This document shows, piece after piece, positions 26,011 to 32,300 of a DNA stretch of 64,000 nucleotides (positions are counted from its first letter, which is position 1; each line of letters starts with the position of its first letter). The notes beneath the pieces are model-generated. The model saw nothing but the letters and a program-made list of their open reading frames with translations, had not been told where the DNA came from and made no database searches. This DNA comes from Trichosphaerium sp. ATCC 40318 (taxonomy: Eukaryota > Protista > Tubulinea): positions 248,001 to 312,000 of the forward strand of contig JALMLS010000179.1 in NCBI GenBank assembly GCA_038496445.1, given 5' to 3'. Position numbers and translations under genes: made by a program.

Positions 26011-28889
26011 CTACATAAAGAGAGTGCTAGCCCAAAATAGAAAATTGTTTTGTGGACTGCTTCCAGTATGTTATGAGTAATGTAGCACTATGTGGAAACT
26101 TTGCACAGACAAATTCTCCATTTCACCTACACAAAGCACCAGTTTTTTGGCCTGGACATACTCACCCGCCATATTATACCTATTCCGTTTGAACCTACCA
26201 TATAGGCTTGCATACACTTCTACAAGGCACATAATCTTGTGTGAGTTAATACTACACGACAAGTTGTTTAAGAAGGCCTGGTAAGACATGAAATTGTTGT
26301 TGGATCAAAGTGATGCCACTTCGAATATTTGGGACACGTGAACAAAAATGTTAGGTTGTAAAAGTTCATAGTTTTTTGACGAGTGTTAAAGCACAGCCCG
26401 ACTTTCTTGTTTTATACGCAGGTACGTTTCCTGGTTCTCTGGTATTACCGTAGTATTTATTTTGTTCGTAGCTGTTGGACCTGTCTCATTCAAGTTTTAC
26501 TAATACTGTCTAGAAAGTGAGTTTCTAGCACTTTTAGTTTTGGATCTAGCAAGATCTGAAACTTCTGTCAAATGGTGTAGATCTATCACAATGTGACTAT
26601 TTGTGTTACAATGTTGTCCTTCATAGTGTACCTTACGTTCCTTGTGATAACAAAATTTACAATGTCAGTTTCACTAGACCATGGAAGATGATCGCAATAT
26701 TTTATCTACGCAAACTGTACATAGTATGATCAAACCATAGGAGTATTCAATGAGATTAAAGTGAAGTAAAAGGTACAAAGCTATCGAAACACTGAATATA
26801 ATGAATAAAGAGAAGTGATGTTGACATTGGCGTTAATCACTAAGCTCATTTGTATGCTTTTTAAACTACTTGCACATGTGTTGACATTTTCTGTGCCTGT
26901 TAACGTATTTACTGACGCCTAAAAAGAACAATCACGCGACATGTGTGTTGTATCAACAAGTTTCCATGGCTTGGATTTGACCTGAAAAAGCGCTATTTAT
27001 TTTAACGATAAGTCTACTTTCTAAAAGACCACTCTCGATTTATAACGCACGTAAGTCTACTCTTATACTCATGTAAAGTACTCCAGCTCTCCTTCAATAG
27101 GGCCGACCAAAAACACTAACATTCACTGCACAGATATCACTTTAAAATCAAACACATGGTAAAAGAACCTACAGTTTAATTTACTACTTCGTTATGACAT
27201 AAGCAACAACTAGTTAATTTAGCTCTAAGTATTACAACACCAAACGGAGCAGTTGATGCTATGTGGGAGCGAACGAACCTTCTTCTATAGTAGTCCCTAA
27301 TACATTGTCACATACCACCTACAACTGTGCGCCTGTACCTACTACACCTACCACCTCGTCAGCACTCAACGCAAGAACTAACAGCTACCCTTCCAATGGC
27401 TCCAGTGGATCCTACACCTACAAATACGCAAACAATTATTGCGGAGTAAGCACAATTACTTACATAAGAGGCTTTTATACTGCATTCACGATGGCAGCCG
27501 TTTTGTAGTTACCGCTAGTATCTCTGAAGCTTTTCTTTATGGTAAAGAGGAAAACTCTGTAATGTAAACAATAAACAAATCCTTACATTGTTTTCAGAAT
27601 GAATATGAGGCCACGTCACAAACAAGAAAGTTGATAAAAACCTGCAGCATGCTATCTAACCATTACGAATTCTCGCCAGAGCTAAAGGTCATGGACAGAA
27701 ATGTGTTCCGTTCTTCCAAATGATCGTATCGCTATCCAAAGATTAGTTGAAATAGGATCTGGGAGGAAACATAAATCTGCATCGAACTATTAATAACATA
27801 AGAAAAACTGTTCATTCCCTGTATTTATTTTGAACTACTATGCTTGGTTCAATATCGTACACCAACAAATAAGAACTAAAACGATTCTCGCAAAGAATTT
27901 ACAATTCTGTCAGTCTAGCGTCTTACGTGAGTGTAAAACTATTCGGTTAGACAAACCAACCTATTCGAATGCAATCAATAGCTCTTTTTATAGCGTCCTG
28001 TTGAATCCCGCATGCCCTTTCAAACCCTTTTGTGCGCGTGTTTACGAACTTGATAAAGTAGACGTTCGTTCGCTAGCATTGAAACGTTCATTCCACAAAT
28101 AATTGTTGGGTGATTCTTGGCGGTGTGGGTTTTTTTGTTGTGCCAACTCGAACGTGCACTATATTTCTACACACTATAAATGCAGGATACACTCGCGGGA
28201 TTTGGTATTTTGTAAAAGAACAATTTGGAGAAAACTGTAAAATATCGGAGGTGCACTCCTTGTGTAATATTCATGGTGATGCCGTATTGAACCTCTATGA
28301 GAATGAAGCTTTGCCAAAGTTCTCGCAACGTCCTGACAAGTACAGAATATTTGTAAAGCGATATTGTGCACCGGTGTAAAACCCATAAAAAACTTGTTAT
28401 CTGTGTTCGGTTAGTAGCGTAGCTAGCGCTACACACGTGATACGCTGATAAACTTTAAACCTATAGAAAGCGGTGCCTACACAACCAACAAAACTATTCT
28501 GTGGTTTTTTATTTTGATGTTTTGTAAGAATTTGGAACAAAAAGCAGCTAATATCGCGAAAGCAGCATACAGTTAAAGAATAGAAATGAATAAAGCGAAT
28601 CGCTATGCGATGGGTAGCAGTATTTTTGGTTTGGGTGAATAAAAGGTATTGGAGAAAAACAATAGTAAAGCGTTTGTAGAGTGTTTGGGTGTTGTTTTAT
28701 TGAAAAAGCTCACAATTGTGGAACGAAAAGCAAACCAATTTTCGGCTTTTAAAGACAAAACCACAAGAGTAATACACAGGTCGCACCTCATCTGATATTA
28801 CATCTATCAGTACGTAATGGTTATTTTACATCGATTTCTTTTTTTTTGTGTATCACGTGACTTTTTGGGGTTCTCACTCCCCTTTAGAC

Positions 28890-31800
28890 ATGTGGAATAC
28901 GCTTTTCGTGGGCCTATTCTTGGTTACCATCGCCGTCTACGTTGATGCTGCTTCGAGCCCTGGGCCGTTCGTAGCAAGTTGCAATGCCTCTACGTCAGCG
29001 TGGGGTTGCGTAGAGTGGAACAAACGCAGAAGCGGAGAAGTACTTCGTCTTCAATGTAAAGATACTCCAGAACCACACATGTCATGGGCTTCTAAAGTTG
29101 TCTTCAGCGACAAATACATCACGTGGGCTGGTAAAGAAGACAATAAACTCTCAGAATACGTTCCTGGTGCTGTAATGGACATTAATATTCGCGTTGTTGA
29201 CTACGAAGAGAAGTATCGCGGTATTCTCATCTATGCTTTATCCGAACAAGGTCAAAGAGTTGGAGAATGGCTTATACCTGAAGAAACTACACGTAGGTTG
29301 ACGTTACTTTCTTTTTTTGTTGTTTTTGGTAGCTTTTGTGAATCAAAAACGTTTTTGTTTAGTTTCAGAATTCTTACTTTTTTTTTGTTTAGCTTTCTTT
29401 CAATTGCCTTGGCCTGATTCGCACAGTTGTGGACAAAGTTTGATGCACAACGACGCAAGTCTAAAGCCTTTAAAGTCTACTTGGAAGTGGAAGGCTCCAC
29501 CTGCCGGCACTGGTAAAGTCACTTTCGAGTGTTTGATAAAACAAGGTCCTGCCAACCACGGCGCTTTTTATTGGCCAAACAAGAACGGACATTTGCAACT
29601 TTCTGAATCCAGTAGCACAAAACCAACACAAACATGGTTCACTTCCGAAGTACGTTTTTAGTCACGTGATTTAGATCGCTTTGGTTTTTTTTTTTACAAC
29701 TGTTTTTCTCATCTTGCTGTTGATGTCGTGTTTCTAACATTTCTGCTAGTTGGATCAATCATGTACTGAACGCTGTGCCCAAGAATCTCTTCTTTGCGAT
29801 AAAGTACTAATGGAAAGCATTGATAGTGGTGATGCTATTGATCAAACTTTCCTTCCTCAATCCATTCCTTGTACGCTTCCATATGTTGGTGGATGTACTG
29901 CTCTCGGCACATCTATGGGTGTTGATGGCCTCTGCTACTACGATGAACCACTTTGTGAAGATGAAGGACGTAACACAGACCGTGTTACATGTGAATCTAA
30001 AGACGGAAACGCAGCAAATGGGTAAGTGTAGATCCAGTTTTTTAGTTTCCAAAAGCACAGCGAAATACTCACCCTCTACTTAGCATGCGCATTTGTAAAT
30101 GTGCCCGTACTACACTCCCTCCATCCACAGTCAGCCAGAGAGGAGCACAACAGAGTCCTGCATCTAAATCGACATTGTCATCCCTCCTCGTTGTATTAGC
30201 ACTTATTGGTCTCACAACACACTCAAGTGGAAAAACAACAACTTCAATTGTTCTTTCCCTTTTCCTCATCGCATTGGTCACCTTACCAACTGGTACACAT
30301 GCTCACAACTGGGTCTACTCAGGCGCCAGAGCAAAGAACAGAGCGACAACACAAAGACCTTGTCCTCCACGAGTTAGTCCTGCTCCTCACGTTCAAGTTG
30401 GACCAAACCAAAAATTCGAGATTGAATGGTCTTCTGGACACAGAGGAGTATCGTATTGGGTTATCCTCAAAGGCGAAGATGAACACAGACTAAGGGAGAT
30501 ATCTAGAACAAAACTCCGTGAATACTTTGAAGAAGCACCACCAGAAGCACGCAAGAGCCTTCCTTCATACCACAGACATTTTGTATCCGGTACAAAGGAA
30601 TTCGACCCTAACCAATTCAAACGAGAAATCCCAGAAACATCTCCAGATTTCTTACCAAGACCTGATCATTTTGGTTCTTGGCCAGCAAACGCTCAATTGT
30701 TCGAGTACAAGGACAGTATTACAAAGGATAACTACGCCGAGTATGTCAATCCAAAGATGCCTTACGTAGAAGCTATGTACAAATCAACACACCACGCGAA
30801 CAGAGCTGGAGATGGTGACATGGTGCAATTGACAATACCTGGTCGCGGTGGCCTAGGATCTTATGTTATTCAATGGTGGTGGTCTGGATACCGTGATTGT
30901 GTTGATGTTGATTATCAACCAAATCAAGTCGATAAGATTTACGGTGAAAGAGATACTGGAAGTGGATTTGTGTACGTCTCTTTTATTTTTTTTTTTCTGT
31001 TTATTTTCTTTTCTGGTGGTGACTTATTTTACCGTTTAGTCGTATTGATCATTGCTACTTTCCAAACAGACGATCCACGGGCAGTACGTCTTTTTACTCG
31101 TTTTTTTTTTTCTTCAACAAAATTTGTTGAACAAGTCGCCTAAATACATACTGTGTAGATTGCCAAAGGGTTTTCAACAATCTTGGACCGTGCAAGTGTG
31201 GAAATTGCTTCGGATTCGCAGTTATGCCAAGAATACTTCCTGACAATCCATACAATGATAAAGCGAACCTCATTCCTTCAAACTGTGACTCACAAGTAAA
31301 ACTAAGCGACCTTACTAACGCCGGAGAAGACCCTAAAGACGTCAATATCTGCTTCTCAGTCACCCCTAGAGGTGGAAGCGATACATTGGCTGGTTACGAA
31401 GTTGTAAACGAAGGTGATCCTGCATACCACTCCACTTGTTACATCAAATCGAATGGACGTAAATTCGCAAATATCGTGCTTCCTAAGCTACACCAAGACA
31501 TTCCTTGGCGACACGGCGAAAGATGCATCTCATGTCATGCTGCAAATTACAACAAGAATACATCACGTATACCAAGATGGCCGCTTACAGACAAATGCAG
31601 AAACTGTGACTTGGAACCTGTTACAACTCCTACTTGGGACCCTCCAAGACTTATTTTAGTAAAGACGGATACAGCATGCGACGGTATGGGTAACTATTGG
31701 CGTGGAAGAACCAAACGCCACACATGCAAAAATGGAGAAGAGAAGGACTGCTTCAAGCAATTGTTTATCAGAGGTCGCGTTCCAGACTTCAACCAAAAGA

Positions 31801-32000
31801 ATTTCCATCCAACAGAGTGCGCTGCAGTCGCTGCAATGGATCCTGACTGCTCAGATACTGTTATCACTACAAAGCAACGATCCCTAGTCACGTGTAGGTG
31901 TCAAACCAAGATAGCCTGTTGCAACCAGTGCAAACAGATTGACGCAGGATTCAGGAATAAACTGTACACACTTCACCGTGGTACACCAGAGCTGAAGTAA
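28890..32000 (+). CDS. Secreted multidomain protein: Reeler + Cys-rich + TM/GPI-like segment + internal signal peptide + LPMO-like His-brace domain + Cys-rich tail
   Basis: Signal peptide; Reeler motifs YVPG, YRGILIYA..RVGEW and MH..K..WKAPPAGTGKVTF. Five GT-AG introns (including 30022-30083) join all ORFs in frame. THA|HNW, W..GHRG and YVIQWWWSGYRDCVDV follow. Confidence 0.8.
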
Positions 32001-32300
32001 AGCAACTTGTTATAGCCCAATAAACATACACAATCATCATTTCGTTAGCATAATACAGCCTCCGTTACTTTGTCAGTACTAAACTTAAACACCTCGAGTA
32101 TTTAAGGAAATATCAACCTTTGCAGCGCCTTCATTAGATAACAGTACCCGAAAATTAAATGGTGGAGTGTCTGGGTATTATGTTGTCACTTGTAGTACAC
32201 CATAGTTTTCAACTGGAGCGACTTTCTTGCTTCAAGTAACAGTCCATCCAAAAGACTTTATTTTTTCTAGTGTACATTTTTGTATTGTTATATTTCCTTT

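Follow-up and report, generated by a model that had tools for sequence, protein, structure and literature searches.

A Trichosphaerium precursor with a Reeler-like module and a predicted internal signal peptide directly before the N-terminal histidine of a candidate new LPMO-like domain

The locus described here lies on the forward strand of contig JALMLS010000179.1 in the assembly of Trichosphaerium sp. ATCC 40318 (GCA_038496445.1), and holds a gene in which a domain resembling the lytic polysaccharide monooxygenases (LPMOs) begins deep inside the encoded chain. The stretch of DNA that was analysed, referred to below as the window, is 64,000 nt long and corresponds to contig positions 248,001-312,000; all positions are given in window numbering, in which the gene occupies 28890-32000. 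The window is eukaryotic in character, with a G+C content of 38% and short GT..AG introns. The spliced coding sequence of 2706 nt is made up of six coding exons and translates into 901 amino acids without an internal stop. Reading from the N-terminus, the protein consists of a signal peptide, a Reeler-like module, a Cys-rich module, a hydrophobic stretch, a basic loop and a second hydrophobic stretch ending in T-H-A, which is followed immediately by the residues H-N-W. These three residues open the LPMO-like domain, here called the HNW domain, and a further Cys-rich module completes the chain. We consider it probable, from the sequence and from structural modelling, that the gene encodes a cellular polyprotein in which an internal cut creates the N-terminal histidine of an LPMO-like copper protein.

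The gene model was compared with Logan RNA contigs from public runs (X1, X2, X3 and X5), which were mapped to positions 28700-32300. The contigs omit exactly 29293-29392, 29650-29749, 30021/22-30082/83, 30972-31039 and 31084-31158. One contig of run X1 (record 1, 1280 nt) has exons 1-4 joined and reaches position 30351, which is 47 nt beyond the histidine codon at 30304, while a 151-nt contig of run X5, which is recorded as RNA-Seq, spans the joint 30020>30083. None of the contigs mapped to this region retains the intron at 30022-30083. Removal of this intron, the third, joins ..AAN-G-MRICKC.. in frame, and because the contigs skip exactly the predicted introns this joint is real and a single message encodes both the Reeler half and the HNW half of the protein. 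An earlier sequence-only reading of the window had proposed that the exons join in one frame through this intron and that the two halves share one transcript, and both proposals are borne out by the X1 and X5 contigs. The positions and motifs that it had assigned to His1, His46, Tyr196, the two hydrophobic stretches and the linker were likewise all found where it had put them. The residues MRICKC, which are the first of exon 4, align with the conserved RxCxC motif of the upstream Cys-rich module, which places the ATG at 30085 within a domain and not at the start of a gene.

Comparison between runs and strains revealed 12 differences inside the coding sequence. Eleven are synonymous, including a change of the stop codon from TAA to TGA, and the remaining one replaces L by F in hydrophobic stretch 1. 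The entire open reading frame (ORF), with the linker, is under purifying selection. No second copy of the gene was found within the 64-kb window by tblastn.

To place the HNW domain in a family we used an exhaustive phmmer search, in which the 222 residues from His385 were compared with 1.84 billion representative sequences at E<=1e-3. This gave 394 relatives, the best with an E-value of 8e-37 and an identity of 36-43%. Almost all of them come from marine metatranscriptomes, with one found in an acantharian transcriptome of EukProt, and none of the 394 bears a name. Word-indexed protein searches returned 3 and 7 matches, without a Pfam-annotated bridge to LPMO_10. The alignment begins at the histidine in 135 of the 394 relatives, and these together with the window protein form the set of 136 sequences in which the residues around the predicted cleavage site were counted.

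The first three residues of the domain are HNW in 129 of these sequences, HNY in 3, DNW in 3 and HQW in 1, giving a histidine at position +1 in 133. Position -1 is occupied by A (104), G (16), S (13) or P (3), so that A, G or S is found in 133 sequences, while at position -3 every one of the 136 has A, V, T, S, C or G. On sequence grounds the occurrence of HNW behind a signal-peptidase-type site is far beyond chance. In 40 of the 136 an ordinary N-terminal signal peptide precedes the histidine, which then falls among the first 60 residues; in the other 96 it is internal, at positions ranging roughly from 90 to 920. Two hydrophobic stretches lie within the 75 residues upstream of 93 of the 96 internal sites. 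The loop between these stretches is positively charged in the internal-type proteins (a mean of 1.9 K/R vs 0.3 D/E), and the median gap is 8.5 residues. The hydrophobic cores of both stretches have a median length of 12 residues; for the family's N-terminal signal peptides the figure is 11. Of 91 internal sites, 71 have P or G at positions -4 to -7. Because of this core size, the P/G-containing c-region and the residues at -3 and -1, the internal segment shows all three regions (n, h and c) expected of a cleavable signal peptide and does not resemble a 20-residue membrane helix.

A cut at the predicted position would fall directly before the histidine, and would therefore leave the free N-terminal His that copper proteins of the LPMO type need. 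A polyprotein processed in this way is expected to have a stop-transfer segment, then a loop with positive charge, and then an internal h-region whose c-region follows the (-3,-1) rule. All of these elements can be recognised in the sequence, as can the placing of His as residue 1 behind a signal-peptidase site that is expected of an LPMO (133 of 136, including the 40 N-terminal cases). The sequence-only reading had predicted cleavage at T-H-A from the window alone, and had suggested that relatives might show whether the histidine and the double hydrophobic stretch are conserved; the T-H-A site fits the (-3,-1) pattern of the 136 sequences, and both features recur in the relatives at the frequencies given above.

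Truncation of contigs does not account for the N-terminal layout, because the mRNA of one protein of this type, P0007, is complete. It is represented by three independent transcript contigs of 1.6 kb with an in-frame stop 24 codons 5' of the ATG, and one of these contigs carries poly(A). In a quick maximum-likelihood tree of 92 domains (IQ-TREE) the N-terminal and internal layouts are interleaved, and well-supported branches force at least 5 switches between them, for example between P0061 and P0064 and between P0039 and P0094. The interleaving implies that a signal peptide at the N-terminus and a hairpin with an internal signal peptide are interchangeable in evolution. In the case of P0039 (952 residues, internal) and P0094 (269 residues, N-terminal) the HNW domains are nearly identical, with branch lengths of 0.10 and 0.05. 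Judging from the sequences, the layout could have switched very recently here, the pair could stem from one gene through alternative transcripts, or the assembly could be chimeric. A further match to the HNW profile was found in a metagenome, where a 165-residue gene call at 6001-6498 of L004, a 183-kb JGI contig, lies in eukaryote-like sequence adjoining Usp and RhoGEF genes. This call probably represents one exon of a gene that is split.

A structural model of the HNW domain was built with AlphaFold2 (AF2) on A1, an alignment of 91 sequences; a single-sequence AlphaFold model (predicted local distance difference test, pLDDT, 32) was not used. The AF2 model is all-beta, with a pLDDT of 93.2 and a predicted template modelling score (pTM) of 0.90. 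The top match in an exhaustive VIA-align comparison is LaX325 (PDB 6IBH), with a Z of 8.1 over 127 aligned residues, an identity of 16% and residue 1 of both chains included in the alignment. An insect AA15 LPMO (TdAA15) is second with a Z of 7.8, and members of AA13, AA10 (several), AA11, AA9 and AA16 follow at Z 5.8-6.6, a range that becomes 5.4-6.6 if fusolin is included. Overall 13 of the top 20 rows are LPMOs or LPMO-like proteins. The modelling supports an Ig-like/FnIII-like beta-sandwich of the LPMO type, which is the fold that the sequence-only reading had expected for this segment. The nearest models in the ESM Atlas belong to haptophyte clusters, in one of which 19% of the members carry LPMO_10 (PF03067; TM 0.54), and LPMO_10 is carried by 13-23% of the members of neighbouring Atlas clusters. 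When clusters are ranked by language-model features, the closest ones carry either LPMO_10 or the name 'chitin-binding type-4'.

Within alignment A1, H1 is present in 90 of the 91 sequences, R9, H46 and Y74 are invariant, and H29 is found in 82. Position 196 is Y in 90 sequences and F in 1, and D142, D198 and D201 are each present in 88. Taken as sequence evidence, this pattern fits a metal site. Cys20 and Cys199 are each found in approximately 75 of the 91 sequences, and may form a disulfide.

The region ahead of the hairpin was studied in A2, an alignment of the N-terminal regions of 75 complete internal-type relatives. Pfam identifies Reeler (PF02014) in 31 of the 75 (best E 3.1e-11), the C-terminal part of Glyco_transf_18 in 5, DOMON in 3 (below the Pfam cut-off) and plastocyanin/azurin in 2. 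The A2 profile matches the solved reeler domain of F-spondin with an E-value of 1.1e-5 and, in a search against the PDB, residues 412-502 of MGAT5 with an E-value of 3.6e-5. Pfam gave no Reeler match on the separate exons of the window gene, since an intron interrupts the Reeler module. Against the A2 profile the window protein scores 308 bits over residues 9-359, and A2 in turn matches the reeler domain and PF02014, so the assignment of a Reeler module made in the sequence-only reading holds, although indirectly. Exon 3 of the window gene gives a weak match to Glyco_transf_18 (E 0.076). The Cys-rich module that it contributes to (29750-30110, A2 positions 201-301) is akin to the C-terminal domain of GnT-V/MGAT5 (Glyco_transf_18 positions of about 470-557), and the catalytic part of that enzyme is absent.

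Other modules are found at the same place in some relatives. In P0024, P0031 and P0059 the module ahead of the internal signal peptide is either a cupredoxin of the plastocyanin/azurin type, or a DOMON-like domain added after the Reeler. The cupredoxin of P0024 stands directly before the hairpin (residues 366-441, 32.8 bits against a cut-off of 21.2). By sequence assignment, the cupredoxin and DOMON partners are extracellular domains of the electron-transfer type. The earlier suggestion of a redox role for the upstream half, made on the grounds that Reeler domains also occur in FRRS1, gains support from the presence of these domains in the equivalent position.

The Cys-rich module at the C-terminal end (31040-31997) is approximately 280 residues long in the window protein and 280-400 in the family, and is conserved in both layouts, as seen in A3, an alignment of 62 relatives and the window protein (63 sequences). 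Its motifs include RxDHC, GVNVVP, DPxDPxFYSTC and KCxSC. No Pfam match to this module was found, nor any relevant PDB match by profile; its neighbours by language-model features are PAN/apple-like, which is a weak lead. The coordinates of all of these features are collected in Table 1.

Table 1. Features of the gene and its product, in window numbering. Residue numbers given with His1, His46, Tyr196, Cys20 and Cys199 count from the first residue of the HNW domain.
Feature	Position	Strand	Remarks
5' untranslated region (UTR) exon	28776..28809	+	Start approximate: X1 record 1 reaches ~28776, with adapter there; 28809/10 joined to 28888
5' UTR intron	28810..28887	+	Joints omitting 77-78 nt in X1, X2 and X3
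Coding exon 1	28890..29292	+	Start ATG 28890; N-terminal signal peptide, then first half of Reeler-like module
N-terminal signal peptide	28890-28949	+	Residues 1-20; C-terminal end V-D-A
Coding exon 2	29393..29649	+	Second half of Reeler-like module; RNA joint 29292>29393
Coding exon 3	29750..30021	+	Cys-rich module akin to GnT-V (MGAT5) C-terminal domain; RNA joint 29649>29750
Intron 3	30022..30083	+	62 nt, GT..AG; removed in X1 and X5 contigs
Coding exon 4	30084..30971	+	End of Cys-rich module, membrane hairpin with internal signal peptide (predicted), HNW domain
Hydrophobic stretch 1, LSSLLVVLALIGL	30175..30213	+	Presumed stop-transfer, or GPI-signal-like
Loop TTHSSGKTTTS	30214..30246	+	Presumed cytosolic n-region of internal signal peptide
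Internal signal peptide, h-region IVLSLFLIALVTL and c-region PTGTHA	30247..30303	+	Predicted signal-peptidase cut between 30303 and 30304
HNW domain	30304..30951	+	Residues 385-600; LPMO-like beta-sandwich (model)
His1 (His385)	30304-30306	+	H at +1 in 133/136
His46 (His430)	30439-30441	+	Invariant in 91/91
Tyr196	30889-30891	+	Start of last strand in AF2 model
Cys20, Cys199	30361, 30898	+	Candidate disulfide pair
Coding exon 5	31040..31083	+	44 nt; RIDHC motif conserved in relatives; joints 30971>31040 and 31083>31159 in X1, X2 and X3
Coding exon 6	31159..32000	+	C-terminal Cys-rich module; stop codon 31998-32000; without hydrophobic tail
3' UTR	32001..32047	+	Transcript contigs end at 32014-32049

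The palindrome CACGTG is over-represented in the DNA around the gene. It occurs 49 times in the 64-kb window compared with 7.9 expected from base composition, and other 6-mer palindromes occur 4-17 times. Copies within the gene lie at 28854, 29120, 29663 and 31889, in the 5' UTR intron, exons and introns.

In the arrangement that we propose, the chain would enter the endoplasmic reticulum via its N-terminal signal peptide, and the Reeler-like and Cys-rich modules would be translocated into the lumen until hydrophobic stretch 1 halts the transfer. The short basic loop would then be cytosolic and serve as the n-region of the second, internal signal peptide, whose hydrophobic stretch 2 would re-insert with its N-terminal end inside and its C-terminal end outside and so restart translocation. 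Signal peptidase would cut after T-H-A (30303/30304), and the product would be a fragment of 517 residues with His385 as its first residue. This fragment is predicted to be soluble because no hydrophobic segment follows His385 in the window protein; a hydrophobic C-terminal tail is present in 3 of the 135 relatives. The amino group and imidazole of His385 would form a copper histidine brace together with His46, probably with Tyr196 below the metal, and the HNW domain would be followed by the Cys-rich, possibly ligand-binding module. The Reeler half would be held in the membrane by the hairpin, or by a lipid anchor after further processing: hydrophobic stretch 1 and the run of small residues that precedes it resemble a glycosylphosphatidylinositol (GPI) attachment signal, so the hairpin might later be exchanged for such an anchor. 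The Reeler half would be made 1:1 with the copper protein and may be its redox or docking partner.

Several observations weigh against this interpretation. Generic Ig-like folds (TTHA1873, UafA, pilins) score similarly in the top rows of VIA-align, and the method's own grading treats Z <=8 as middling, so a Z near 8 supports the fold class without proving homology. Foldseek gave no match in the PDB at E<=1e-3, with LPMOs recurrent among its weak rows. Sequence profiles are equally silent: among the 91 members of A1 the Pfam family LPMO_10 is found in none and AA9 (PF03443) in one (E 0.0057), the HNW domain of the window protein has no Pfam match, and the alignment profile finds no LPMO among PDB sequences. 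The candidate brace residues are not the only conserved ones, as H29, a His near position 92, D142, D198 and D201 are also conserved and are alternative candidate ligands. The hydrophobic cores of approximately 12-13 residues are short for stable membrane spans, and for this reason the hairpin topology is only a model. Finally, D replaces H at position 1 in three relatives, P0032, P0123 and P0125. All three have DNW behind the same signal-peptidase site, and P0032, the only one of them in A1, keeps His46; by their sequences, these variants may be copper-free or have altered ligands. Since no Pfam or PDB sequence profile detects the HNW domain, we class it, on the basis of sequence and model, as a new LPMO-like family with what would be a new way of exposing the N-terminal histidine. 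The sequence-only reading had also raised the idea of a distinct family, and the absence of any Pfam or PDB LPMO profile detection agrees with it.

The role of the copper domain can be read in two ways. For an oxidative enzyme, to which we give slightly less than an even chance, the favourable evidence is the conserved Tyr196, the possible binding module and the electron-transfer-type partners found in relatives. A copper-handling protein of the X325/Bim1 type is a more tentative assignment. Here the favourable evidence is LaX325 as the top structural match, together with D142, D198 and D201, whose conservation exceeds 95% and which could provide the additional Asp ligand that is typical of X325. 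The metatranscriptomes and haptophyte clusters in which the family and its neighbours occur also represent marine phytoplankton, where trace-metal uptake outweighs polymer degradation. Reeler and DOMON domains co-occur in a metal reductase, ferric-chelate reductase 1. The histidine-brace proteins X325/Bim1 leave cellulose uncut and act in copper import (PMC7924993, PMC7529816).

If this second assignment is extended to the whole precursor, the HNW domain would be a copper- or metal-handling protein of the X325/Bim1 or CopC type and not a polysaccharide oxidase, and the upstream half, whether Reeler, DOMON or cupredoxin, would carry out metal reduction or hand-over on the cell surface, as in FRRS1-type reductases. 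We think this complete scheme rather unlikely. X325 proteins are GPI-anchored, whereas the copper half described here has neither a C-terminal hydrophobic tail nor a GPI signal. Behind the copper domain, where a binding module would be placed, comes the large Cys-rich module, which is conserved and has weak PAN-like features. Tyr196 is conserved in 90 of 91 sequences, and an axial Tyr is a feature of LPMOs that is set against the Asp ligand of X325 (PMC7529816).

That the protein stays uncut is an alternative that we regard as improbable. In this case the product would be a two-pass membrane protein with both halves outside, HNW would be merely a motif following a helix, and the internal-type members would have no histidine brace. 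Two hydrophobic stretches separated by a basic loop do also have the appearance of a helical-hairpin anchor. However, a membrane helix needs neither A, G or S at -1 (133 of 136), nor a small residue or V at -3 (136 of 136), nor a Pro/Gly-containing c-region, and an h-core of 12 residues is the size of a signal peptide and not of a transmembrane helix. Moreover, the same domain starts with the same His after true N-terminal signal peptides, and the two contexts have been swapped repeatedly.

The proposal that the halves are separate products is very improbable. In that case an upstream gene would end at the TAA at 30023-30025, inside the unspliced intron, and a second would start at ATG 30085, by way of an internal promoter, of trans-splicing to the acceptor at 30083 or of internal initiation. 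In its favour, the unspliced sequence does contain this stop and has an ATG directly 3' of the acceptor, and 51 of 92 internal-type relatives have a Met ahead of the second hydrophobic stretch. Against it, two independent runs show cis removal of the intron, one contig covers exons 1-4, none of the mapped contigs retains the intron, and MRICKC belongs to the upstream RxCxC motif. The same uninterrupted ORF is also present in relatives whose transcript contigs are free of introns, and a Met 11-35 residues before the histidine is absent in 41 of the 92, the window protein included, so that internal initiation is not the general route. A separate gene at ATG 30085 and trans-splicing were accordingly dropped as candidates on the RNA contigs and on the domain alignment across the junction.

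The preferred reading, a cellular polyprotein with an internal cut before the histidine, can be taken further, to a widespread protist system in which signal peptidase cuts one precursor in two. The first part would be an extracellular module for electron transfer or docking (Reeler, DOMON or cupredoxin) that is held at the membrane, perhaps after conversion to a GPI-anchored form, and the second a copper monooxygenase that is secreted and belongs to a new LPMO family. Taken with all of its parts, this picture is unlikely. If it were true, an enzyme and its dedicated reductant partner would be made 1:1 at the cell surface, and a biochemical role would be defined for the Reeler domain for the first time.

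On the prevailing view, the catalytic domain of a histidine-brace copper protein has to stand directly behind the N-terminal signal peptide, and this rule of N-terminal placement is used both for recognising such proteins and for designing expression constructs. The family described here, which is large and lacks annotation, would keep the chemistry and break the architecture, and LPMO-like domains could accordingly be sought in the middle of long ORFs. It would also add an LPMO-like family from marine protists. The sequence-only reading knew of no description of this architecture, and our literature search, which covered LPMOs in connection with reeler domains, X325, protists or amoebae as well as internal signal peptides in connection with the His brace, yielded no account of the family or of its layout, which is weak evidence as most subscription journals lie outside the coverage of the search.

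Compared with the LPMOs (AA10 and AA15, Pfam LPMO_10; AA9, AA11, AA13 and AA16), the HNW domain is alike in being a predicted secreted beta-sandwich with His first after a signal-peptidase site, a second invariant His and a Tyr in the last hairpin. AA10 proteins start with H-G-x-x-x-x-P-x-S-R, which the N-terminal motif of the HNW domain, H-N-W-x-x-S/T-P-S/G-R, resembles. It differs in that residues 2-3 are N-W instead of G and an aromatic residue, the spacing between the first and second His is 45 residues, two thirds of the members have the histidine hundreds of residues into the precursor, behind an internal signal peptide, and the domain is unrecognised by Pfam and PDB sequence profiles. 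A first histidine together with a second His binds copper in LPMOs, in X325/Bim1 and in CopC (PMC7924993, PMC7529816). The X325/Bim1 group provides the best structural match in LaX325, and is a group of N-terminal His-brace proteins at the cell surface, as is proposed for the HNW protein. In X325, however, an Asp serves as an extra ligand and there is no activity on polysaccharides (PMC7529816), and the HNW copper half is different in lacking a C-terminal anchor signal and in carrying a large Cys-rich module.

The arrangement of the precursor finds its closest likeness in viral polyproteins such as flavivirus C-prM-E-NS1, alphavirus p62-6K-E1 and the bunyavirus glycoprotein precursor. Viral structural polyproteins are processed by host signal peptidase, and these examples likewise have a stop-transfer segment followed by an internal signal with (-3,-1) residues, several lumenal ectodomains and a fixed stoichiometry. 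The difference is that here the genes form a cellular family of free-living protists, and that the predicted cut would make a metal-binding N-terminus. To our knowledge no cellular enzyme family is built in this way, nor did the literature search turn one up, and the family would be a rare cellular example of polyprotein processing by signal peptidase. With FRRS1/SDR2 (Reeler-DOMON-cytochrome b561) and F-spondin the window protein shares an N-terminal Reeler-like module, to which some relatives add a DOMON-like domain scoring below cut-off. It differs from FRRS1/SDR2 in having no cytochrome b561, the Reeler being followed instead by a domain like the C-terminus of GnT-V and by the predicted hairpin. 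The Reeler, DOMON and cupredoxin partners suggest candidates for natural electron donors, or for a marine copper-uptake relay.

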